A stretch of 64,000 nucleotides of DNA from Heterodontus francisci (lineage: Eukaryota). The notes under the pieces are model-generated. The model was not told where the DNA came from, made no database searches, and saw only the letters and a list, made by a program, of their open reading frames with translations. The position numbers and the translations under genes are program-made. The stretch covers positions 31,156,430-31,220,429 of the forward strand of contig NC_090399.1 in NCBI RefSeq assembly GCF_036365525.1. Reading direction: 5' to 3'. Positions 2,818-48,853 of this stretch are shown piece by piece. How positions within the stretch are numbered: position 1 is the first letter of the stretch; every line of letters starts with the position of its first letter.

Positions 2818-3477
2818 AATAATGAACATCTTGGTCCAAAAGCAAAAACATGAGATACACGTTTAAGACTAGTACATGGTAAAAAAAAATGGTAGTCATA
2901 GTTTGAAGTTGTTGAACTCAATATTGAGTACAGAAGACTGTCGAGTGCCTAATTGGAAGATAGGATGCTGTTTATCAAGCTTTCTCTGAGCTTCACTGGA
3001 ACACTACAGAAGAACAAGGACAGAAATGTGGACATGAGAGTAGGGAGGAAAAATAAAATAGCAAGAAAACCAGAAGCTCGGAGTCATGCTTGCAGACTGA
3101 ATGGAGGTGTTCCACAAAGCAGTCACCCAGTCTGCATTTGGTCTCCCCAGTGTAGAGGAGATCACATTGTGTGCAGCGAATACAGTATACTAAATTGAAA
3201 AAAAGTACAAGTAAATCGCTGCTTCACCTGGAAGGAGTGTTTGGTGTTTGGGGCCTTGATTGGTGAGGAAAGAGGAGGTAAAAGGGCAGCTACTACACCT
3301 CCTGTGATTGCATGGGAAGCTGCCGTGGGAAGAGGTTGAGCTGTCGGGGTGATGGAGGAGTGGACCAGGATATCACAGAGGGAATTATGACTTTGACAGG
3401 GGAGGGCAGGGTCAATGTGTTTGGCTGTGCCATGTAGTTTTTAAATGATGTGATTTCCTTCTTGTTGGGTTACTTAC

Positions 3478-3518
3478 CAGATCTTGCACTCCTGTTGATA
3501 GAAACGAGGTGAAACTCG
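3478..3518 (-). CDS. Putative 41-nt exon D of the NCR3-like gene
   Basis: ttattttgcag|CGAGTT...GATCTG|gtaagt, both sites strong. Open in all frames (phase 1-0 ASFTSFLSTGVQDL; phase 2-1 EFHLVSINRSARS). Confidence 0.55.
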
Positions 3519-3804
3519 CTGCAAAATAAATTATGGGAATATAAATATAAAACACACTAGCAGGTCTCCCCTGACATTGTTCATGGTGAATCAGATGGTG
3601 CACTGCTTTATAATAATGGTAATCTGTCATCAAAAAAATGACTGCTAAAATGTTACAAGTATGGGTGTTGTTTACAGGAAGTGTTTGTTGTGTGTAAGAT
3701 ATTGCCACATTGCAAATATATCCATCAGGCATTTAGCCCTTACAGCTTTGCTCAGTTGCCAACACTAAATAGTGAACATTGCAAGATTCAAGCAACATAC
3801 ATAC

Positions 3805-3820
3805 TCCACGGATTAGAGGC
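3805..3820 (-). CDS. Putative micro-exon C1 (16 nt, or a terminal exon) with an in-frame TAA
   Basis: catccctcaatag|GCCTCTAATCCGTGGA|gtatgt. The acceptor is conserved in all three repeat copies. Phase 1 reading is G-L-stop. Confidence 0.4.
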
Positions 3821-4238
3821 CTATTGAGGGATGAAATTGAAATTATCGACAGTGATGGCATTTTTGTTGAATGGAAATGAAGAAAAGCAATGTTGGCTTA
3901 ATGTAAATCAGATCCCAGAGACTAAGGATGTGAATTCTTGTACAAATATAAAGCGATGAATATGAAGACTTTTTTTTTTAAAGAACCCAAAATATTTTCA
4001 TGCTGACCATTTGTGATCTTCTACACTTCTGTTTAAAACAAAGCCACTAACTGAGCTAAAACAACTGTAATGGTACAGTTTGAAAAGCCTCATTTCAGGC
4101 ATTTCCTTGAACCATAATTTCGATAAATTGGGAACTTTTAAAGCAGTTTTAAACCTTTGGATAATAATATTTTGGGTTCCAATATCCCCATTTAAGCTAA
4201 TATTGTTTGCTCATGGATAAAATACCAACTTTTCTTAC

Positions 4239-4276
4239 CCGCTGTGGGAGTGATTGCTGGAATATCTATTTCTTGC
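4239..4276 (-). CDS. Putative exon B1 (38 nt, phase 2-1: QEIDIPAITPTA)
   Basis: ttcttgctttgcag|GCAAGAA...CAGCGG|gtaaga. Same length and splice sites in all three copies. Confidence 0.6.
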
Positions 4277-4774
4277 CTGCAAAGCAAGAAGATGAAACTG
4301 GTCAACTGCATGGTCTCATACCACAGCAACAAATAATTATATTTATATAGCAACTTTAACATAATAAAATATCCCAAACAATTCACAGGAGCATTATAAA
4401 ACAAAATATGGCATTGAGCCACATAAGGAATATTAGATCAGATGACCAAAAGTTTGGACAAAGATGTAGGTTTGAAGGAATGTCTGAAAAGACGTAAGTG
4501 AGGTAGAGAGGCGAAGAGGTGTAGGGAGGGTATTCCACAGTTTTGTAACATAGCAGCATAGACAAACTTAAGGCACTGAAGGAGGCTGTTCAGCTTCAAG
4601 TGATTTATTAAATTGTGATATGTTTCTGCCTCTACCACCCTTTCAGGCAATGAGTTACAGACCTCCACCACTCTCTGGGTAAAATAAATAGTGCTGAACC
4701 CCCCTCTAATCCTTCTCCCAGTTATTCCATGTATTTCTTATCATATGAATGTATATTGACTAATAATTACTCAC

Positions 4775-4793
4775 GTTGGAGCCTGTTGAACAT
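4775..4793 (-). CDS. Putative micro-exon A1 (19 nt, phase 1-2: (D)VQQAP(T))
   Basis: tctcccttttcattag|ATGTTCAACAGGCTCCAAC|gtgagt. Confidence 0.6.
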
Positions 4794-5860
4794 CTAATGA
4801 AAAGGGAGATACAAAAGACAAGTGGATTAGAAAATACATTTCTTATTACTTACCTCTTATTTCTAATCACCACCAGTTTTGCACACGGAGTAATACTGAC
4901 TTCAAAATAATTCATTATGTGAAGTGATTCAATATGTATGAGAGACAAGATAAAACCACTGTATGAGTGCAAATTGTTCCATTTTGAATGCATTTTATCT
5001 GACAATACATCTCTAGAAAAGTACAGAATGAGGGATGGTCTGGGAGAGTTGTGTCATCTCCATTCATTCCTACCCATATCCGATTGCAGCCCCAATATCT
5101 CTTAGAACATCAGACAATGGAATGTTTCAGGTATTCATACACTAATGTCACCAATGGATTAGAATCATTGAATATAACAGTACAGCACAGAAGAAGACCA
5201 TGTGGCCTGATGAGTCTGTGCAGGACATTTCACAGAGCTATCCTGTTAGTCCTCACTTTCACCCTTTACCCTACACTTTTCCACATTCATCAAAAATGTA
5301 TTTAACACCCTGGAATTGTAAATTTGTTTCTCCTACACAACTTTGAGCTTCTCCATTCTGCATTACCACAGACAGACTCTGTTGATTAGAGGCCTATTGA
5401 GGGATGGAATAGTAATTATCTACAGTGATGGCATTTTTGTTAAGTGGGACAGAAAAAAAAGTGGTGCCTTATGATAAATCAATCACAGAGACTGAGGATC
5501 TGCATTCTTGTACAAATGTAACAAACTTTTCTAAAGAGTTGAATATGAACACTTTTTTAGAATATAAAATATTTTCATGCTTGTAATTTGTCATCTTGAT
5601 AAGTTTTTGTTCAAAGGAAAGACATTAACTGAACTATGACAAGTGTAATGGCACAGTTTGAAAAGCCTGATTTCAAACATTTCTCCGGAACCATAAGTTA
5701 CGTATCAAATTGTAAACTTTTAAACCAGCTTTAAAGCTTTGGATAGTATTATTTTTGTGTTGGGGGGCGGGGGGTGGGGGGGGGTGGTGCTGGTGGTGGG
5801 GGGTGGTTTGTATTATCCCCATGGAAGTTTATCCATAGATTAAAAACCAGATTTTCTTAC

Positions 5861-5898
5861 CAACTGTTGAAGTGATTTCTGGAATATCTGTTCCTTGT
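5861..5898 (-). CDS. Putative exon B2 (38 nt: QGTDIPEITSTV)
   Basis: ttgatttgcag|ACAAGG...CAGTTG|gtaaga. Confidence 0.6.
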
Positions 5899-6056
5899 CT
5901 GCAAATCAAGTCGGTGAAAGATGTCAATTGCATGTGCTCATACCACAACAACTATTTATATTTATATCGCACTTTTGTCGTAATAAAATGTTACAGGACA
6001 CTTCACAGGAGCATTATAAAACAAAATATGGCACTGAGCGACATAAGGAGTATTAG

Positions 6057-6223
6057 AGTTAACATTTCGGGTCAGTGACCCTTCTTCGGAAGGGTCTTCT
6101 GATCACTAACCCGAAATGTTAACTGTGCTTCTCTTTTCACAGATGCTGCCAGACCTGCTGAGTGGTTCCAGCATTGCTTGTTTTTATTTCAGATTTCCAG
6201 CATCTGCAGTATTTTGCTTTTAT
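6057..6223 (+). mobile_element. Miniature PLE-derived insertion (terminal repeat with a short inverted 5' arm)
   Basis: Absent from the other two repeat copies. 14-bp TSD ataaggagtattag (6043-6056 / 6224-6237). Sequence matches the PLE end at 23630-23769. Confidence 0.85.
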
Positions 6224-6658
6224 ATAAGGAGTATTAGGTCAGATGACCAAAAGCTTGGATAAAGAGTTGGGGTTTAAAGAGTGTCTAATAGGAAGAAAAC
6301 GAGGCAGAGAGGAAGAGAGGTGTACAGAGAGTATTCCACAGTTTTGTAACATAGAAACATAGAAAAACCTAAGGCACAGAAGGAAGCTCTTCAGCCCATC
6401 ATGTCTATGCAGGTCGAGAAAGAGTTATCCATCCTAATCTGACTTTCCATCTCTTGGTCTGTAGCCCTGGAAATTAGAGAACTTCAAGTGCTTTATAAAT
6501 GAGATGTGTTTCTGCCTCTACCACCTTTCAGGCAATGAGTTGCAGACCTCCACTACCTTATGGTGATAAAATTACTGCTCAGCACCCCTCTAATACTTCT
6601 ACCAATTACTCAGTGTATATCTTATCATATGAATGTATATTTACGAACAATTACTCAC

Positions 6659-6677
6659 CTTTGAGTCTGAAGAACAT
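6659..6677 (-). CDS. Putative micro-exon A2 (19 nt: (D)VLQTQ(R))
   Basis: gtcccttttcattag|ATGTTCTTCAGACTCAAAG|gtgagt. Confidence 0.6.
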
Positions 6678-9677
6678 CTAATGAAAAGGGACATACAAAA
6701 GAAAAGTTTATTACAAAATACATTTATTAATTAAGTCTTATTTCTTATTGTTTCCAGTTTTGCATACAGAGCAATACTGACTTCAACATAATTCAATGTT
6801 CAAATATACGCGCATATAAATATGTATAAGAGACATGATGAAAACACCATATGAATGGAATTTGCTTCATTTTGAATGCATTTTATCTTAAAATGCATCT
6901 CAAGAAAGGAATAGGCTGAGAGATGGCCTCAGAGAGAGTGCCATCCCCACCCATTGCCACCCATATCCAACTGCATCAATGTCTCTTAGAACTTTAAACA
7001 ATGGAATGTCTGATGTATTCATACGCTAATGCAACAATAAATTAGAATCAATGAATATAACAGTACAGCACAGAAGGAGGCCATGCGGGCTGATGAGTCT
7101 GTGCAGGCCCTTTCACAGAGTAATCCAGTTCATCCTTACTTTCCCCCTTTTCCTGACAATTTTCCCCATTCTTCAAGAATTTATCCATTTCCCTTGGATT
7201 ATAAATTTGTTTTCCATATACAACTTTGAGCTTCTCCCATCTGCATTACTCCATACAGACTCTGTTGATTCAAGGCCTATTGAGGGATGGAATGGTAATC
7301 AACTACAAACAAACAAGGAACAAGGAACAGTACAGCACAGGAACAGGCCATTCGGCCCTCCAAGCCTGTGCCGATCTTGATGCCTGCATAAACTAAAACC
7401 TTCTGCACTTCCGGGGTCCATATCCCTCTATTCACATCCGATTCATGTATTTGTCAAGATGCCTCTTAAACGTCTCTATGGTACCTGCTTCCACCACCTC
7501 CCCCGGCAACAATTTCCAGGCACTCACCACCCTCTGTGTAAAGAACTTGCCTCGCACATCCCCTCTAAACTTTGCCCCTCTCACCTTAAACCTATGTCCC
7601 CCAGTAACTTACTCTTCCAGGCTGGGAAAAAGCTTCTGACTATCCACTCTGTCCATGCCGCTTATAACTTTGTAAACCTCTATTATGTCGCCCCTCCACC
7701 TCCATCGTTTCAGTGAAAACAATGCGAGTTTATCCAACCTCTCCTCATAGCTAATGCCCTCCAGACCAGGCAACATCCTGGTAAACCTCTTCTGTACCCT
7801 CTCCAAAGCCTTCACGTCCTTCTGATAGTGTGGCGACCAGAATTGCACGCAATATTCTAAGTGTGGCCTAACTAAAGTTCTGTACAGCTGCAGCATGACT
7901 TGCCTATTTTTATACTCTATGCCGTGACCGATGAAGGCAAGCATGCCGTATGCCTTCTTGACTACGTTATCCACCTGCGTTGCCACTTTCAGTGACCTGT
8001 GGACCTGTACGCCCAGATCTCTCCGCCTGTCAATACTCCTAAGGGTTCTGCCATTTACTGTATACTTCCCACCTGCATTAGACCTTCCAAAATGCATTAC
8101 CTCTCATTTGTCCAAATTAAACTCCAGCTGCCATTTCTCCGCCCAAGTCTCCAACCGATCCATATCCTGCTGTATCGTCTGACAATCCTCATCACTGTCC
8201 ACAACTCCACCAAACTTTGTGTCATCCACAAACTTACTAATCAGACCAGCTACATTTTTCTCCAAATCATTTATATATACTACAAACAGCAAAGGTCCCA
8301 GCACTGATCCCTGTGGAACACCACTAGTCAAATCCCTCCATTCAGAAAAGCACCCTTCCACTGCTACCCTTTGTCTTCTCTGACCGAGCCAGTTCTGTAT
8401 CCATCTTGCCAGCTCCCCTCTGATCCCATGTGACTTCACCTTTTGTATCAGTCTGCCATGAGGGACCTTGTCAAAGGCTTTACTGAAGTCCAAAGATAAC
8501 ATCCACTGCCATTCCTTCATCAATCATCTTTGTCACTTCCTCAAAAAACTCGAATACATTAGTGAGACACAACCTCCCCTTCACAAAACCATGCTGCCTC
8601 TCGCTAATAAGTCCATTTGTTTCCAAATGGGAGTAAATCCTGTCCCGAAGAATCCTCTCTAATAATTTCCCTACCACTGATGTAAGGCTCACCGGCCTAT
8701 AATTCCCTGGATTATCCTTGCTACCCTTCTCAAACAAAGGAACAACATTGGCTATACTCCAGTCCTCTGGGACCTCACCTGTAGCCAATGAGAATGCAAA
8801 GGTTTCTGTCAAGGGCCCAGCAATTTCTTCCCTTGCCTCCCTCAGTATTCTGGGGTAGATCCCATCAGGCCCTAGGGATTTATCTACCTTAATGCTTTGC
8901 AAGACACTCAACACCTCCTCCTTTTTGATAATGAGATGACTGAGACTATCTACACTCCCTTCCCTAGGCTCATCATCCACCAAGTCCTTCTACTTGGTGA
9001 ATACTCATGCAAAATACTCATTTCGCACCTCGCACATTTCCTCTGGCTCCACACATAGAGTGCCTTCTCTGTCCTTGAGTCGGCCAACCCTTTCCCTGGT
9101 TACCCTCTTGCTCTTTATATACGTATAAAAAGCCTTGGGATTTTCCTTAATCCTGTTTGCCAATGACTTCTCATAACCCATTTTAGCCCTCCTGACTCCT
9201 TGCTTCAGTTCCTTCCTAGTGTCTTTATATTCATCAAGGGATTCGTCTGTTCCCAGCCTTCCAGCCCTTACAAATGCTTCCTTTTTCTTTTTGACGAGGC
9301 TCACAATATCCCGCGTTATCCAAGGTTCCCGAAACTTGCCAAACTTATCCTTCTTCCTCACAGGAACATGCTGGTCCTGCATTCTAATCAACTGATGGTT
9401 GAAAGACTCAAGCATGTCAGATGTTGATTTCGTCTCAAACAGACGCCCCCAATCTAAATTGTTCAGTTCCTGCCTAATATTGTTATAATTAGCCTTCCCC
9501 CAATTTAGCACCTTCACCCGAGGACTTCTCTTATCCTTATCCACAAGTACCTTAAAACTTATGGAATTATGGTCACTGTTCCCGAAATGCTCCCCTACTG
9601 AAACTTCAACCAGCTGGCCGGGCTCATTCCCCAATACCAGGTCCAGTACGGCCGCATCCCTAGTTGGACTATCTACA

Positions 9678-9726
9678 AAGAACAAAGAACAGTACAGCAC
9701 AGGAACAGGCCATTCGGCCCTCCAAT
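9678..9726 (-). mobile_element. ~50-bp extreme 3' end of CR1 nested in a CR1 of the same family
   Basis: aagaacaaagaacagtacagcacaggaacaggccattcggccctccaa is near-identical to the tails at 1645 and 7315. Flanked by taca/taca. Confidence 0.8.
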
Positions 9727-9806
9727 TACATATTGTTTCAAGAAGCCCTCCTGGATGGTCTTTACAAATTCTGCCCCATCCAAGCTAAGTGTGTCCCAGT
9801 CAATAT

Positions 9807-9966
9807 CCTTTTGGGCCTCCTTATCTTGAAAGACAATGGATACGTGCCTGGAGGTGGTCAGTGGTTTGTGAAGCAGCGCCTGGAGTGGCTATAAAGGCCA
9901 ATTCTAGAGTGACAGGCTCTTCCACAAGTGTTGCAGAGAAATTTGTTTGTCGGGGCTGTTGCACTA
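9807..9966 (-). mobile_element. Short RTE-family 3' fragment nested in CR1
   Basis: Near-identical to 18790-18946. TSD tcaatat (9800-9806 / 9967-9973). Confidence 0.9.
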
Positions 9967-10425
9967 TCAATATAGGGGAAGTTAAAATCACCCACCACTA
10001 CAACCCTGTTACCTTTACATCTTTACAGTGGTGGCATTTTTGTTAAACGGGACAGAAGGAAAGCAGTGGTGCCTTTTGATAAATTAGATCTAGAGACTGA
10101 GGATCAACATTCTTCTACAAGTGTAACAACTTGTCTAAAGAGATGAATATGAACACTTTTTAAGAATATAAAATATTTTCATGCTGTCAATTTGTTATCT
10201 TGATAATTTTATGTTTAATACTAGGACATTAAATGAGCTATGGCAACTGTAATAGCACAGTTTGAAAAGCCTGATTTCAGGCATTTCCCTGAACCATAAC
10301 TTGGGTATCAAATTGTAAACCTTTAAAGCAGTTTTAAACCTTTGGATAGTAATTGTTTGGGTTCTAATATCCCCATAAAAGGTTATATTGTTTGTCCATG
10401 GATTAAAAAACTCTGCTTTTCTTAC

Positions 10426-10463
10426 CCTCTATGGAAGTCATGTCTGGAATATTTGTTTCTTGT
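10426..10463 (-). CDS. Putative exon B3 (38 nt: QETNIPDMTSIE)
   Basis: tcttgctttgcag|ACAAGA...TAGAGG|gtaaga. Confidence 0.65.
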
Positions 10464-11045
10464 CTGCAAAGCAAGAGGTGAAACAAATGAACTGCGTGTT
10501 CTCAATCCACAACTACGATTACTTATATTTATATGGCAACATTAACATCTAAAAACATCGCAAGGCACTTCACAAGAGCAAAATAAAAAACATGGCAATG
10601 TAACACCTAAGAAGATATTAGGTCAGATGACCAAATTCTAGGACACAAGATACGTTTTAAGGAATGTCTTAATAGAAGAAAGTGAAGTAGAGAAGCAGAG
10701 AGGTGCAGGGAGGATATTCCGCAGTTTTGTAACAGCGAAGCATAGAAAAATATAAGGCACAGAAGGAGGATGTTCCGCCTATCATGTCTGTGCCAGTCAA
10801 AAAAGAGTTATCCAGCCTAATCTGACTTTCCAGCTCTTGATTTGTTGCCGTGTAAATTACAGCACGTCAAGTTTTTTTAAAAATGTAATGTGTTTCTGCC
10901 TCTACCACCCTTTCAGGCAATGAGTTCCAGACGCCACCACCCTCTGGTTGAAAAGGAATTACTGCTTAACTCCCATCTAATCCTTCTACCAATTACTCTG
11001 TGTATTTCTTATCATATAAATGTATATTTACTAACAATTACTCAC

Positions 11046-11064
11046 CTTTGAATCTGAAGAATAG
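11046..11064 (-). CDS. Putative micro-exon A3 (19 nt: (A)ILQIQ(R))
   Basis: tctcccttttcattag|CTATTCTTCAGATTCAAAG|gtgagt. Phase-compatible with the TM exon donor. Confidence 0.65.
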
Positions 11065-11289
11065 CTAATGAAAAGGGAGATACAGAAGAAAAGTGCATTA
11101 CAAAATACATTTCTCATTACTTAATTTCTTATTGTTGCCAGTTTTGCTAATGGAGCAAAATAATTAATTGTGGGAAGTGATTCAATATGTATGAGAGACT
11201 TGATAACGCCACCGTATGAATGGAAGTTGTTTAATTTTTCATACATTTTATCTTCATATACATTTCAAGAAAAGAACAGGCTAAGGGGT

Positions 11290-11905
11290 AGCCTAAGCGA
11301 GGTCTTTTATGTTCTGAGAAGGTTTGATTGGACAGACGTAAAGAAAATGTTTCTGCTTGTGGGGGGAGTTCAAAACTAGTGGCTACAAATATAAGATAGT
11401 CACGAATAAGTACAGTAAGGAATTAAGGAGGATTTCTTTATCAACAGCGTGGATGCACATGGAGCACATGGAGCAGCTGACGCAAATAGCTGAGATGCAT
11501 GGAGTTATAGAGTCACAGAGTCATTTACAGCATTTAAGGAGGCCATGTGGCCGATTGAGTCCATGCCAGCTCTCGGTGGAGCAATCCAGACAGTCCCATT
11601 TCCCCACTCTTTCCCTGCAGTCCTGCAAGTTTATTTCCTACAAGTGCCCACCCAATTTCCTTTTGAAATCATTGACGATCTCTGTTTCCACAACCCTCGT
11701 AGGCAGTGAATCCGTGGTCAGTGCCACTCACTGCATAATGATGTTCTTCCTCACATCCTCCTTGCATCTCTTGCCAAAAACCTGAAATCTGTGTACCCTA
11801 GTCCTTGTACCATCAACTAATGGGAATATCTTTTCTTTGTCTACCCTATCCCAAGATGTAATAATCTTGTGCACCTCTATCACATCTCCCCTCAATTTCC
11901 TTTGC
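11290..11905. mobile_element. Two degenerate CR1 3' fragments (+ then -); the second is interrupted by the LTR element and resumes at 18465
   Basis: ORF 11728-11931 contains LRGDVIEVHKII...IFPLV...TR. The CR1 motif ctttgctgc|agaacaaccccagc is split by the LTR insertion. Confidence 0.7.
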
Positions 11906-12405: not shown

Positions 12406-15400
12406 ATTTCCCGTGGTCAGCAGGATCCTCGAGGCTTGGTCGCCAGTGCTTGGTATAATGACGGCATCAGAGAGCAGGTGAGTACATTTACTTTATCAAC
12501 CATTAGATATGGACGTTGGTGTTCTGGACGTGAATCTGGCGGGTTTATTTGAGGATCCAAACCAAAGAACAGGTCCACAGGTGTAGTAACTAAAGGTGGC
12601 ACAGAGTCAGGATCTTGGTTCCTGGGGTAAAAGAGGAGGTAATATCGTTCTGCGGGTTAATCAGGTGAAGAAGTGGACGGTTGTAGAAGAAACAAGTGGT
12701 CCGTTTCTGCAGCGAGGAAGTAAGAACAATTGGAGAGGAAGGGAGAGGTCCATTATCATTTGGGAACCATGGTAGGGTATGGAGAGGTCAGTATCCACAG
12801 GAAGTAGCGAACAGCCGTAGAGGAAGCGAGAAGTCCATTTCCCGCAGAGAGGAATTAAGAACGATCGGAGAGGAAATCAGAAGACCGTTTCCCATGTAGG
12901 AACGTTAGTAGGTCATCGAGAAGTCCGTACCCATTCAAATAGTAACACTATTCAGACTGTAAAACATGAGCCGTGGCAAATAGGATCCAGAGTGGGGACC
13001 CAAGGGTCACTCACCAAATTTTTGGCAGCCAACAACAAGAAGACTTTAGCTAAAATGATCAGGAAGGTTGGGATCCCTCATGGATACCAGATAAGCATAA
13101 GGAATGGGGGAAAGAACAGACAAAAAGGAATAATTATATTATGCAAGAGCTATCTTACCACGTGTCAGTATGGAAAGTCTGAATTAGCTAGGCTAACTCA
13201 GGGAAAGGGACAGGTTACAAATGTTAAAATGGTGAGAGCCAGAGTGGGAAAGTGAGAGATATCAGGCTGAGGTAAGAGGGACAATTTAAACAAGACGTTT
13301 TAGTGAAATTTAAATGGAGTAAAAGCAAGTTACTGTGTCTTTGTTCAAGTCTGCATGAACGTTGGAAGCTTCCACGACTTTATGTACTTGTCTGTGTAGC
13401 TTGTGTGCTGTAGAGCTAACAGTCGTTAAGCCTTTGTTGTCCGGCTTTAATGTTGAAAGTATTAGTCTGTTACTTGTTCTATTCTTGTACATGTATAATA
13501 CTGTGAGAATCTTGAGTAATATTTTGGATGTGAACTAGTGTATTCCTTGGGCTTCGGGCTGGGAATGAAATGCAGATATTTCGGTACTTTGAATTCATAA
13601 CCCATTACAGGAATCAATATTCCTAAGTTTTTGGAATTAAGGAAGTTGGAATGTGATTGCTGAGTGTTGTCATTTCAATCTAAGTTTGTGCACCCAGAAA
13701 TAGGATAGAAAAATGGAATTGCATTTTAATTAAAAATGCTGGTGTGGTGTTTTATTTGTATTTTAAAAGTTGGTTTTGAAACTATGAAAAGACAATGCAC
13801 AGTTTTGTAAACAATAAGCTTCAGCCTTGAAGGCTTGGAAATACCTGGCAGAAATCCAATTTCAAGTTTTTGCTTTAATTGGACCAAAGTTTTAAATCAA
13901 CTATTGATTTGTGTTTTGCAGTTTAAATTAAAGACAATGTCTTACTGACTGTTAAAGGATAATAAAACGAGATATTGGAAAGATTTTAAAGTTAATTTAA
14001 GAGGCTGTGGTGAAGTCTTCATTGCAAGAATGTTAAATAAACTTTTCTTTAGTATTTGGTTTATTACAATCATTTGAAAAAGCGCCAGAAGAAAGAATAT
14101 GAAAAGTAACATCATTTATCTTTGCTTTTTAAAAAAAGAAAACACGTGCTATCCTGTTCTCTGTGCAGTTAATAAGCATTGGTGTGAATTAAATTCAAAT
14201 ATTTAAGATTAACTGACCTGTTAAGTTGGGGCAACTAGAATTTCATTAATGATCACAATGAACTTTGAAGTTGTCATTTCATGATATGAGCGAGTATTTA
14301 ATTCTGGATATAAGACCTGCTCATATATAACATTGGCACTTTTGGCTTCTAAATGTTTATTGCAGTTTACTGAAATTTGGAATCATCGTTGTTGTGTGAA
14401 AAAAAAACCTTAGGTTTAGAATCTCTTACAGAATTTTAAAAGTTCGGAAACAAATTGGGGTTTAATCTGAAAAGCTGCCTTCTCTAATTGAGATGTTTTG
14501 AAGTTTAAGGGGAAAATCAAAATCTAAAAACAAACAAGCAGTCTAGATGTTTTCTCCGAATACAGTGAATATGGGAAGACATGGAACATTAACAGAAACT
14601 ATCACCCCAACAGCACTGTTATTTGAATTTGTCATAATTTTGAGAGGCAAAACGTCCAGTATAATTTAACAAGTTACTTTTAAGAATATAAAATGTTATC
14701 TAATATAATGAACAAACAAATAAACGAAGGATAAAACAGAAAAGGGAATTGTAGCTCTGTGTCATGAACAAATAAGAGAGAGTGTGTGTGGAGTGTAGCA
14801 ATAAGGATCTTAGAAGGTCGGCAGTAAATAATTTGGGGTCGTCTTCCCATTTTAGGAAGCTGTCATGAACAGATTTAGGCAGGAGTCAGGAAGAAAGTTC
14901 ATGTGTGCGTAAATTTCTGTTTGTGTGTTATATCAGTGTCCTGTGATTTCCTTGGCTGTGTTAGCTCTGTCTGTGTCATCGAACTAATGACTTATTAACC
15001 CTTTGTGGCCTGGTCCTGCATGACGTTCTAAAGTTTTGATAGCTGTATAAAATGGATGAGAAGCTGTTAAAGCACACGTTTTATTTTGGCAATGGAAAAT
15101 ACAGAAGGGTTCCTTTAAGGGCGACGATAGGTAATAATAATCAGTACTGCCAATTCGATTGTTTCAATGGGTGAAAAACTCTAAGGCCCTTTCTTTCACT
15201 CCATGCTCGTGAGAGGTTGCTGTTTGAAGTTAGCAGACTTAAACGAAGGACCAAGACTACTGATAAACGTTATTTCCTTTGTTTCTTTGTTTTCATCTAA
15301 AGTGTTGCAGAAATTGTGTGGATAATGTATGTGTGTAAGTTTTAATGTGCTTTCTTTCCTAAAGGGTCGTTGTGCAAAAGGGATGTCAGCACTTTAAAAA

Positions 15401-25234: not shown

Positions 25235-25348
25235 CCTTCTTTCTGCGTAACTGCACACAGCGGAGTACAACGATTAGAAGGATACCTACTTCCACTGCTG
25301 CACTAATGAACAGGGTTAAAAATAGAGCCGTGGTAGATTTAGTTTTCC
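25235..25348 (-). CDS. ncr3: Transmembrane exon of the NCR3/NKp30-like receptor: (G)KTKSTTALFLTLFISAAVEVGILLIVVLRCVQLRRKK
   Basis: tgtgttctccatag|GG...AAGG|gtaagg. 114 nt, phase 1-1, a 22-aa hydrophobic helix followed by a basic stop-transfer. Not in the ORF track. Confidence 0.88.
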
Positions 25349-25894: not shown

Positions 25895-26233
25895 CTCTCA
25901 CAGTGAGATTCGTTCCTGCTCCATATTCCTCGCCCAGTTGCATCATTTGCACTTTGCAGTAATACACCCCGGAATCATTCACTCTCACATCCGTTATTAT
26001 TATGGACGCATCTCCATGAAAGAAAGCCTCTTTTTGTTTGTAGATCCGTCCTCTGTACTGTGTTGTCCCATTGGAAACTTCAATGCCATTTCTGCTGTCC
26101 TTGTACCAACTATAAGACCCTATCGCCTTGGAGAGGTTGGCTGCGTATGTGCAGGGGAGGAAGACTGTCTGTCCTATATCTGCCAGAATCCTGGGCACCT
26201 TTTGAATAACTGTGAACTTCTCAGTGTTAATTC
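25895..26233 (-). CDS. ncr3: VJ-type Ig V-set domain exon, NKp30/NCR3-like
   Basis: tttactgatttccag|...AGAG|gtcagt. 339 nt, phase 1-1. FLPC..AIGSYSWYKD..G.EVSNGT..YRGR..DVRVNDSGVYYC..LG..YGAGTNLTV mirrors human NKp30 motifs as recalled (FLPC, AIGSVTW, EVRNGT, DVR, G.GT.L.V). Confidence 0.92.
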
Positions 26234-27200: not shown

Positions 27201-27243
27201 CCGAGAGGGCAGCCAATATCCATAGGGTGGGGCTTGGACTCAT
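27201..27243 (-). CDS. ncr3: Leader (signal peptide) exon MSPSPTLWILAALS(G)
   Basis: ATG at 27243 in gaaATG context. A perfect G|gtaagt donor in phase 1 matches the V exon. An acceptor ccactgcag| at 27247 implies upstream UTR exons. Confidence 0.8.
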
Positions 27244-47495: not shown

Positions 47496-47549
47496 GAATT
47501 AAAGCAAAAGGACAGAGAGCAAGCAAATGTTGTTTCGTTCCCATGGTAA

Positions 47550-48853
47550 GAACATCGAACAAAGAATAGTACAGCACAGGAATAGGCCATTCGGCCCACC
47601 AAGCCTGCGCCGATCTTGATGCCTGCCTAAAATAAAACCTTCTGCACTTCAGGGGAACGTATCCCTCTATTCCCATCCTATTCATGTATTTGTCAAGATG
47701 CCTCTTAAACGTCGCTATCGTACGTGCTTCCACCACTTCCCCTGGCAGCAAATTCCAGGCACTCACCACCCTCTGTGTAAAGAACTTGCCTCGCACATCC
47801 GCTCTAAACTTTGACCCTCTCACCGTAAACCTATGTCCCCCAGTAACTGACTCTTCCACCCTGGGAAAAAGCTTCTGTCTATCCACTCTGTCCATGCCAT
47901 TCTTAACTGTGTAAACCTCTATCATGTCGCCCCTCCACCTCCGTCGTTCCAGTGAAAACAATGCGAGTTTATCCAACCTCTCCTCATAGCTAATGCCTTC
48001 CAGACCAGGCAACATCCTGGTAAACCTCTTCTGTACCCTCTCCAAAACCTTCACCTCCTTCGGGTAGTAAGGCGAACAGAATTGCACGCAATATTCTAAG
48101 TGTGGCCTATCTAATGTTCTGTACATCTGCAGCATGACTTGCCTATTTTTATACTCTATGCCCCGTCCGATGAAGGCAAGCATGCCGTATGCCTTCTTGA
48201 CTACCTTATCCAGTTGCATTGCCACTTTTAGTGACCTGTGGACGTGTACGCCCAGATCTCTCTGCCTGTCAATAGTCCTAATGGTTCTGCCGTTTACTGT
48301 ATACTTCCCACCTGCATTAGACCTTCCAAAATGCATTACCTCACATTTCTCTGGATTAAACTCCATCTTCCATTTCTCCACCCAAGTCTCCCTCCAACTG
48401 ATCTATATCCTGCTGTATCCTTTGACAATCCTCATCATTATCCACAACTCCACCAACCTTTGTGTTGTCCGCAAACTTACTAATCAGACCAGCTACATTT
48501 TCCTCCAAATCATTTATATATACTACAAAGAGCAAAGGTCCCAGCACTGATCCCTGTGGAACACCACTAGTCACAGCCCCCCATTCAGAAAACACCCATC
48601 CACTGCTACCCTCTGTCTTCTATGACCGAGCCACTTCTGTATTCATCTTGTCAGCTCACCTCTGATCCCGTGTGACTTCACCTTTTGTACTAATCTACCA
48701 TTAGGGACCTTGTCAAAGGCTTTACTGAAGTCCATATAGACAACATCCACTGCCCTTCCTTCATCAATCATCTTCGTCACTTCCTCAAAAAACTCAGTCA
48801 GGTTTGTGAGACACGACCTCCCCTTCACAAAACAATGCTGTCTCTCGCTAACT
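47550..48853 (-). mobile_element. CR1 LINE, 5'-truncated
   Basis: ORFs 48643-48828, 48356-48595 and 47437-48381. Same family as 1644-2817. Confidence 0.95.

Follow-up and report, generated by a model that had tools for sequence, protein, structure and literature searches.

Tandem triplication of a micro-exon pair in an NCR3 (NKp30)-like receptor gene of Heterodontus francisci

Introduction

Mammalian NKp30 combines a basic transmembrane (TM) residue with a short tail and signals via CD3zeta/FcRgamma. Linkage to the MHC and binding of B7H6 also count among the features of the NCR3/NKp30 group. In PECAM-1/CD31 and similar ITIM receptors, many short exons make up the cytoplasmic tail, and alternative splicing affects some of these; the tail exons of PECAM-1 are not known to be tandem duplicates. 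Shark genes of the NCR3 (NKp30) family have reportedly been described by Kinlein et al. in 2021 and Flajnik et al. in 2012. Internal protein repeats can arise by tandem exon duplication, a general phenomenon reportedly described by Letunic, Copley, and Bork in 2002.

The gene analyzed here lies on the minus strand of a 64,000-nucleotide stretch of Heterodontus francisci DNA (contig NC_090399.1; the window). Like the shark NCR3 family, it shows a non-rearranging VJ-type V domain, a leader-V-TM layout, and membership in a local cluster (NCBI calls the adjoining gene "natural cytotoxicity triggering receptor 3-like"). Both the basic TM residue and the short tail of mammalian NKp30 are absent: the gene has a Glu in the TM helix (...ISAAVEVGILL...), a tail of ~155 to 210 residues with tyrosine motifs, and a triplicated cassette of two micro-exons. 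These mammalian traits may not define the shark NCR3 family. We consider it highly likely that the cassette arose through an old tandem triplication of a segment carrying a 19-nt and a 38-nt exon, that the resulting pairs are spliced serially, and that they encode a probably disordered juxtamembrane segment.

Results

For protein comparisons, the V exon was searched directly, followed by the public H. francisci protein XP_067865378.1 (P0007). Its match to the window is 100% for four kinds of exon (leader, TM, cassette-B, and 41-nt) and extends over the whole length of the V exon; exon A of the cassette is shorter than tblastn can match and was compared via hand translation. The exons surrounding the cassettes are as follows.

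27201..27243, minus strand: coding part of the leader exon, with the ATG at 27243-27241; encodes MSPSPTLWILAALS and ends in phase 1; 100% to P0007 residues 1-15 in tblastn
25895..26233, minus strand: VJ-type V-set Ig exon, 339 nt, phase 1 to 1; includes the J-like GAGTNLTV
25235..25348, minus strand: stalk/TM exon, 114 nt, phase 1 to 1; the membrane helix contains Glu, and the encoded sequence ends in ...VQLRRKK; 100% to P0007 residues 128-165
3478..3518, minus strand: next cytoplasmic exon, encoding ASFTSFLSTGVQDL; 41 nt, phase 1 to 0; RNA joint 4239>3518

The V exon encodes a single V-set domain (Pfam; E = 7e-13) of the VJ type, closed within the same exon by GAGTNLTV, which follows the J-like pattern G-x-G-T-x-L-x-V. 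Among solved structures, its best match is human NKp30/NCR3 (E = 8e-17); the top four PDB matches are all human NCR3, and the next family, pIgR (1e-8), trails by eight orders of magnitude. The tail exons downstream of 3478..3518 fall beyond the window start. The tail carries YxxM (SIYIPM), ITIM-like (IQYTEI), and YEEL (FEYEEL) motifs, of which IQYTEI in P0007 (exon outside the window) conforms to the ITIM consensus (S/I/V/L)-x-Y-x-x-(I/V/L), with VQYATI, IQYAVI, and IHYATL as its counterparts in homologs. The length of the tail and these three motifs set the receptor apart from a short-tailed activating NKp30; it is most likely inhibitory, with putative SHP recruitment. In the neighboring gene, the ITIM exon is itself duplicated, and both copies stand in series in the public models.

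Between the TM exon and the 41-nt exon lie three tandem copies of one unit, each with a 19-nt exon (A) and a 38-nt exon (B), along with two copy-specific insertions. A further candidate exon lies at 15042.

11046..11064, minus strand: cassette 1 exon A, 19 nt; encoded in 7/7 RefSeq isoforms
10426..10463, minus strand: cassette 1 exon B, 38 nt; encoded in 7/7 RefSeq isoforms
7312..10023, minus strand: copy-specific LINE insertion, reverse transcriptase-coding, sense to the gene; 2.7 kb, between cassettes 1 and 2
6659..6677, minus strand: cassette 2 exon A, 19 nt; RNA joint 6659>5898
6055..6223, strand unassigned: copy-specific SINE-like insertion; 169 nt, between exons A and B of cassette 2
5861..5898, minus strand: cassette 2 exon B, 38 nt; RNA joints 6659>5898 and 5861>4793
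4775..4793, minus strand: cassette 3 exon A, 19 nt; RNA joints 5861>4793 and 4775>4276
4239..4276, minus strand: cassette 3 exon B, 38 nt; RNA joints 4775>4276 and 4239>3518

The six exons had been predicted from the letters of the window alone, and their coordinates, lengths, and borders all match that prediction: every A exon is preceded by cattag and followed by gtgagt, and every B exon by ttgcag and gtaaga, respectively. Degenerate patterns of exon plus borders each match at exactly three places in the window, where chance alone predicts 0. Self-BLAST recovers three copies (3795-5424, 5421-7307, and 10024-11301), as predicted, whereas the unit size of ~1.57 kb given originally has to be corrected to a period of ~1.6 to 1.7 kb once the LINE and SINE-like insertions are subtracted. 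Each cassette is frame-neutral (phases 1-2-1), and P0007 contains all three 19-residue translations unchanged. The LINE insertion shares 91 to 94% identity with copies at 1644-2817 and 47548-48851, and the SINE-like insertion shares 88 to 93% identity with three other copies within the window; as the units themselves are only ~81% identical to each other, both insertions are younger than the triplication. The SINE-like insertion has very deep coverage in RNA contigs. A search of 3300-11400 against Rfam gave no match, and the array is absent from the output of Tandem Repeats Finder because its period exceeds 500.

Intron identity between the copies is 81 to 82%, which implies that the duplication is old, and exon identity is 70 to 81%. 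With an assumed neutral rate of 0.5-1e-9 per site per year, the corrected divergence of ~21% would put the age of the triplication on the order of 100 My. Splice sites are conserved above background: 47/52 splice-flank columns are identical across the three copies versus a background of 56% (permutation P = 0.0005), and the splice dinucleotides are kept in 8/8 columns (expected probability, 0.01). The absence of exon indels alone is nonsignificant (P = 0.15). The cassette codons have a dN/dS of at least 1, with 8.5 to 13 nonsynonymous versus 1 to 2.5 synonymous differences over 17 whole codons (codons lying wholly inside one exon), and the exons evolve no slower than the intron. Purifying selection acts on the splice flanks and exempts the residues, the latter as judged by dN/dS from these 17 codons.

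A same-species paralog, a Scyliorhinus homolog, and a Chiloscyllium homolog have one recognizable cassette each, and the Mobula tail has at most one divergent cassette. Since relatives with a recognizable cassette have a single copy, the 19-residue repeat behind the NKp30-like TM exon grew by exon-pair duplication, as had been proposed. A weak and unproven match (E = 16) links the paralog P0001 (KKQIYQKSI) with exon 2B read in a different frame. Two elements recur in the three repeats and in the single cassettes of Scyliorhinus, Chiloscyllium, and the paralog: the core I-(P/S)-(E/D/A)-(I/M)-T-(S/P) and, ahead of it, Q-x-Q-R-Q. These would be expected if the cassette were a functional short linear docking motif, in which case triplication would raise the valency for a cytoplasmic partner, and the repeat would be an adaptation, not just a spacer that is tolerated. 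The exon identity of copies 1 and 3, which falls below that of the intron (0.70 versus 0.81; Fisher P = 0.056), could then reflect diversification around a fixed core. We nevertheless consider this reading unlikely, as Pfam searches recover no known motif or domain, ESM Atlas searches with the tail return sub-threshold matches only, the QRQ half is gone from copy 3, and a single copy is enough in every relative with a recognizable cassette. We know of no partner for such a motif. Word-based protein searches with the tail found nothing beyond isoforms of the same gene. A calcineurin PxIxIT-like reading of I-P-E-I-T-S was discarded, since a hydrophobic residue is missing at the fifth position.

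Quite unlikely, in our estimate, is the broader proposition that inhibitory NCR3-like receptors of elasmobranchs share the cassette as a conserved docking motif and that its copy number sets signaling strength; if true, the number of exon pairs would be a heritable means of tuning an immune receptor. That number is three here versus one in relatives and is perhaps variable between individuals. AlphaFold2, run with a 12-sequence alignment, gives residues 171-278 a pLDDT of <50 and no secondary structure, and the segment is probably a flexible, disordered juxtamembrane linker with a small kept core, (D/N)-I-P-x-(I/M)-T.

All seven RefSeq isoforms (X1 to X7; XP_067865370-379) contain the exact predicted peptide AILQIQRQETNIPDMTSIE / DVLQTQRQGTDIPEITSTV / DVQQAPTQEIDIPAITPTA, and P0007 has the three repeats in the predicted frame. 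The micro-exons do escape ORF finders, as originally claimed, but not annotation: all six are already annotated in RefSeq. Spliced contigs, one per run in two runs (X1 and X2) of a single sample and absent from a third run, contain the joints 6659>5898, 5861>4793, 4775>4276, and 4239>3518, and thus join cassettes 2 and 3 serially to the exon beginning at 3518. All four joints read CT..AC on the plus strand, i.e., GT..AG on the gene strand; the RNA nature of the runs is a guess by software, but contigs spliced at GT..AG are hardly DNA. Of the six predicted junctions, RNA thereby bears out three, along with 4239>3518 downstream of them; the three of cassette 1 (25235>11064, 11046>10463, and 10426>6677) are taken from the seven RefSeq models.

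These data also bear on whether the cassettes form a splicing-tunable module, yielding tails of one to three repeats and thereby setting how far the tyrosine motifs stand from the membrane and, through this, how potent they are. Skipping of a pair would be tolerable, the 57-nt pair being frame-neutral, and the gene is otherwise heavily alternatively spliced. We regard such tuning as very unlikely: variation across the seven isoforms consists of downstream exons and TM/V skipping with all three cassettes constant, the splice sites are all strong and conserved, and no pair-skipping joint (e.g., 5861>3518 or 6659>4276) occurs in those isoforms or among the joints of the contigs, which lose rare variants, so that minor cassette-skipping forms could escape. 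The term "length-tunable" in the original prediction therefore does not hold as a property of splicing. Another reading would make the extra copies an annotation artifact, or pseudo-exons, missing from real mRNA, as exon evolution at the pace of the intron and the nonsignificant indel result might suggest. This reading is extremely improbable and was rejected on the RNA contigs: in two runs they read from 2A through 2B, 3A, and 3B into the following exon at exact GT..AG borders, which largely refutes it for cassettes 2 and 3. Conservation of the splice flanks well above background also opposes it.

Discussion

The triplication is real and transcribed, and it is a fairly ordinary exon duplication, with a familiar mechanism and sequences already in RefSeq. 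We propose that a segment of ~1.6 to 1.7 kb was tandemly triplicated long ago in one H. francisci NCR3-like gene. In relatives, the two micro-exons of this segment encode only one stretch of 19 residues, directly beneath the membrane. A pair contributes 57 nt in phase 1-2-1 together with strong, copied splice signals, and all three pairs would therefore be spliced serially after the TM exon. The resulting 57 residues (3 x 19) would separate the membrane from the tyrosine motifs. Once included, a pair would probably become locked in, since loss of a single micro-exon would shift the frame and remove the ITIM-like tail. Such a lock-in would account for conserved splice sites beside freely drifting codons, and the pattern observed is consistent with a frame lock that retains duplicated micro-exons in the message. 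The net outcome may be a longer spacer, possibly with three copies of a docking motif, in a most likely inhibitory receptor.

The locus shows that six micro-exons, with their phases and junctions, are recoverable from raw sequence in a transposon-laden shark gene. It also documents tail growth by tandem exon duplication in a fast-evolving elasmobranch NKp30-like receptor cluster, in which the duplicated ITIM exon of the neighboring gene reflects the same habit. This is of relevance mainly to comparative immunologists. A literature search on shark NKp30 tails found nothing (Kinlein et al. 2021 and Flajnik et al. 2012 being outside that scope).

In exon make-up and motif, the tail resembles that of PECAM-1 in consisting of several very short exons, and IQYTEI recalls VQYTEV. 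As in tandem exon duplication generally, the homologous exons are adjacent, their flanking introns are homologous, and length and phase are the same; here, however, the duplicated element is a micro-exon pair, frame-neutral only as a pair. Unlike mutually exclusive duplicated exons, all copies of the cassette are used in series. In nurse shark UrIg2 (PMC12227049), the duplicated exons are recent, nearly identical, and encode whole extracellular C1 Ig domains, whereas the present duplicates are cytoplasmic micro-exons that have diverged by ~19%.

Recovery of the array and its gene

Reading of the minus strand of window 3700-11400 recovered three copies of each of two short segments with canonical borders, and degenerate patterns for the two exons with their borders each gave exactly three matches in the 64-kb window (0 expected by chance). 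Self-BLAST likewise recovered three copies, with a period of ~1.6-1.7 kb once the LINE and SINE-like insertions are taken out. The original prediction of conserved 19-nt and 38-nt exons in three tandem minus-strand copies was thus borne out, except for its unit length of ~1.57 kb. The array is absent from the Tandem Repeats Finder output, whose longest reported period is 500.

Features of the receptor gene and array (window coordinates)
27243-27201, minus: leader exon
26233-25895, minus: VJ-type V exon, ending GAGTNLTV
25348-25235, minus: stalk/TM exon, ending in phase 1
11064-11046, 6677-6659, 4793-4775, minus: exon A (19 nt) of cassettes 1, 2, and 3, bordered by cattag and gtgagt
10463-10426, 5898-5861, 4276-4239, minus: exon B (38 nt) of cassettes 1, 2, and 3, bordered by ttgcag and gtaaga
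3518-3478, minus: 41-nt exon after cassette 3, encoding ASFTSFLSTGVQDL
3795-5424, 5421-7307, 10024-11301: array copies (self-BLAST)
7312-10023: 2.7-kb RT-coding LINE insertion (self-BLAST)
6055-6223: 169-nt SINE-like insertion in the intron of cassette 2

The SINE-like element contains a long internal inverted repeat, has no match in Rfam, and is hugely abundant in RNA contigs, where its summed depth reaches as much as ~5e5 and chimeric joints and loose ends are numerous.

Searched with HMMER against 1.84 billion cluster representatives, the V exon retrieved a 320-residue, 99% identical Heterodontus francisci protein, P0007 (XP_067865378.1, isoform X6), which represented the gene product in our searches in place of a joining of the window exons. 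With tblastn, its leader, TM, cassette-B, and 41-nt exons matched the window at 100%, and it aligned along the full length of the V exon. The A exons lie below the reach of tblastn; translated by hand, they correspond to P0007 residues 166-222. Past ...VQLRRKK, P0007 reads AILQIQRQETNIPDMTSIE DVLQTQRQGTDIPEITSTV DVQQAPTQEIDIPAITPTA, exactly the cassette translation first read from the DNA in an open frame after the TM exon. There follow ASFTSFLSTGVQDL and a tail with SIYIPM, IQYTEI, and FEYEEL, encoded beyond the window.

The V domain is a Pfam V-set domain whose best solved relatives are four human NKp30/NCR3 entries (E ~8e-17), with pIgR the next family (1e-8); on these matches, the NKp30-like label is justified for this domain. 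The TM exon places a Glu within the membrane helix (…ISAAVEVGILL…; window 25290-25288). The paralogue P0004 also has a TM Glu (…ISAAGEIGIF…), and an acidic TM residue is therefore common to members of the subfamily.

Use of the cassettes in transcripts

All three cassettes are present in 7/7 RefSeq isoforms, X1-X7 (XP_067865370 to 379), which differ in exons further downstream and in skipping of the TM exon (X4) or of the V and TM exons (X7). In X4 (P0161) the V exon is joined straight to cassette 1 and in X7 (P0157) the leader is; both joins are in frame because all of the exons concerned share phase 1. The X7 join indirectly suggests transcript support for the acceptor of exon 1A.

A search with the V-TM stretch recovered three sequencing runs of one sample, RNA by the tool's guess, with about one-third of its words present in two of the three. 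Mapping covered window 3300-7300 (cassettes 2 and 3 plus the exon that follows), the cassette 1 junctions resting on the RefSeq models. One spliced contig was found in run X1 (depth 15.7) and one in run X2 (depth 14.6); run X3 had none.

Splice joints in the contigs of runs X1 and X2
6659>5898: 760 bases skipped
5861>4793: 1067 bases skipped
4775>4276: 498 bases skipped
4239>3518: 720 bases skipped

Every joint is CT..AC on the plus strand, i.e., GT..AG on the gene strand. The first three are among the six junctions predicted from sequence; the last, from the final cassette to the following exon, is additional.

Selection and the proposed role of the repeat

We aligned the three copies and compared the exons with the surrounding sequence. 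In pairwise comparison the copies are 81-82% identical outside the exons and 70-81% identical within; indel events occur at ~0.0175 per aligned base outside and at 0 inside, an absence that alone is not significant (P=0.15). Every one of the 8 splice dinucleotide columns is invariant among the three copies (expected 0.01). Counting as splice flank the 20 nt that precede and the 6 nt that follow each exon, 47/52 columns are likewise invariant, against 56% of the remaining alignment (permutation P=0.0005), a conservation above background that the original prediction had called for. Over the 17 codons lying wholly within one exon, each pair differs by 8.5-13 nonsynonymous and 1-2.5 synonymous changes (dN/dS 1.2-4.6, from small numbers). 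Therefore, selection has kept splicing and frame, not the residues.

The micro-exon lengths, 19 and 38 nt, are not divisible by three, so that dropping just one of the pair would put the downstream sequence out of frame and remove the signaling tail. We infer that such a frame lock-in would be enough to explain strongly conserved splice signals alongside unconstrained residues.

From a 12-sequence alignment, AlphaFold2 continues the TM helix as far as residue 174, in the first half of cassette 1, and gives residues 171-278 a pLDDT of <50 without secondary structure, which is compatible with disorder but weak evidence for it. What stays conserved in the repeat is a short core, (D/N)-I-P-x-(I/M)-T. 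Given the predicted disorder, the drifting codons, and this short core, we favor a flexible juxtamembrane linker grown from 19 to 57 residues, which would set the YxxM and ITIM-like motifs further off the membrane. That the unit is instead a docking motif with valency raised by triplication we regard as rather unlikely. The length tuning proposed originally, if taken as alternative splicing of the cassettes, is more doubtful still, being supported by no isoform or contig: none of the joints listed for window 3300-7300, from contigs in which minor isoforms are not visible, skips a cassette pair.

Origin of the array and other tail exons

A small HMM of the cassette, run over 157 retrieved proteins, found three copies only in the isoforms of this gene. 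Single cassettes were found in an H. francisci three-V paralogue (DVQQVQREETDIPENTSTA), in Scyliorhinus canicula (DVQLSQRQDTVSPEIVCVD), and in Chiloscyllium plagiosum and C. punctatum (GAQWAQRP.RVISEITSVD); in Mobula hypostoma, visual inspection shows at most a divergent single unit. The tail order is common to these species: TM, cassette, AS..S..G.QDL, NQ..LLESD.LC, IY.PM, ITIM-like motif, and DYGYDELN. This shared order and the single copy in relatives make one cassette the ancestral state, with triplication confined to this gene among the sequences examined, in agreement with growth by exon-pair duplication. The three copies are mutually equidistant (corrected divergence, ~0.21), and the two duplication steps therefore followed closely on one another. 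Under an assumed, not measured, neutral rate, the triplication would be roughly 100 My old. Both the LINE and the SINE-like element match their other copies at 88-94% identity and are younger than the triplication.

The neighboring gene has two ITIM-like exons (window 61277-61191 and 59937-59851, minus strand), both serial in its models XP_067865380/381 (P0158, P0057; "natural cytotoxicity triggering receptor 3-like") as ...ANEDDNVQYSALNVNEREEKRRSSVDKDK TNEADNVQYCTLTFNEGKQNNRSSDDKK. The pair adds a second tail-exon duplication to the cluster, with both exons used in tandem and not as two alternative tails. The TM exon and cassette 1 are separated by a 14-kb intron, in which lies a candidate exon (window 15042 to ~14986, minus strand) with a good acceptor (ttttatacag) and a fitting phase 1, reading AIKTLERHAGPGHKGLISH and then a stop; it shares 75% identity with AIKTFDHHAGPG, the segment that follows the TM in paralogue P0001 (XP_067865388). 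Used by 0/7 isoforms, it is possibly a relic or else a terminal exon for an alternative short tail. The P0001 tail KKQIYQKSI weakly matches another frame of exon 2B (KEQIFQKSL, window 5896-5870; E=16); this could reflect a B-like exon that P0001 reads in a different frame, or chance.

Comparison with known systems

Mammalian NKp30 has a basic TM residue, whereas this receptor has a Glu in the helix and, unlike mammalian NKp30, a long tail with ITIM-like motifs; it is therefore probably inhibitory. The cassette exons are already annotated in RefSeq, and a literature search that stopped short of the text of two shark NKp30 papers found no paper describing the repeat. Tandem exon duplication is a well-known source of internal repeats. 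In UrIg2, another shark VJ gene, two adjacent exons underwent three duplications involving whole Ig domains (PMC12227049). The unit here is instead a micro-exon pair, frame-neutral only as a pair; this, the use of all copies in series, and the cytoplasmic location of the segment are what is particular to the array.
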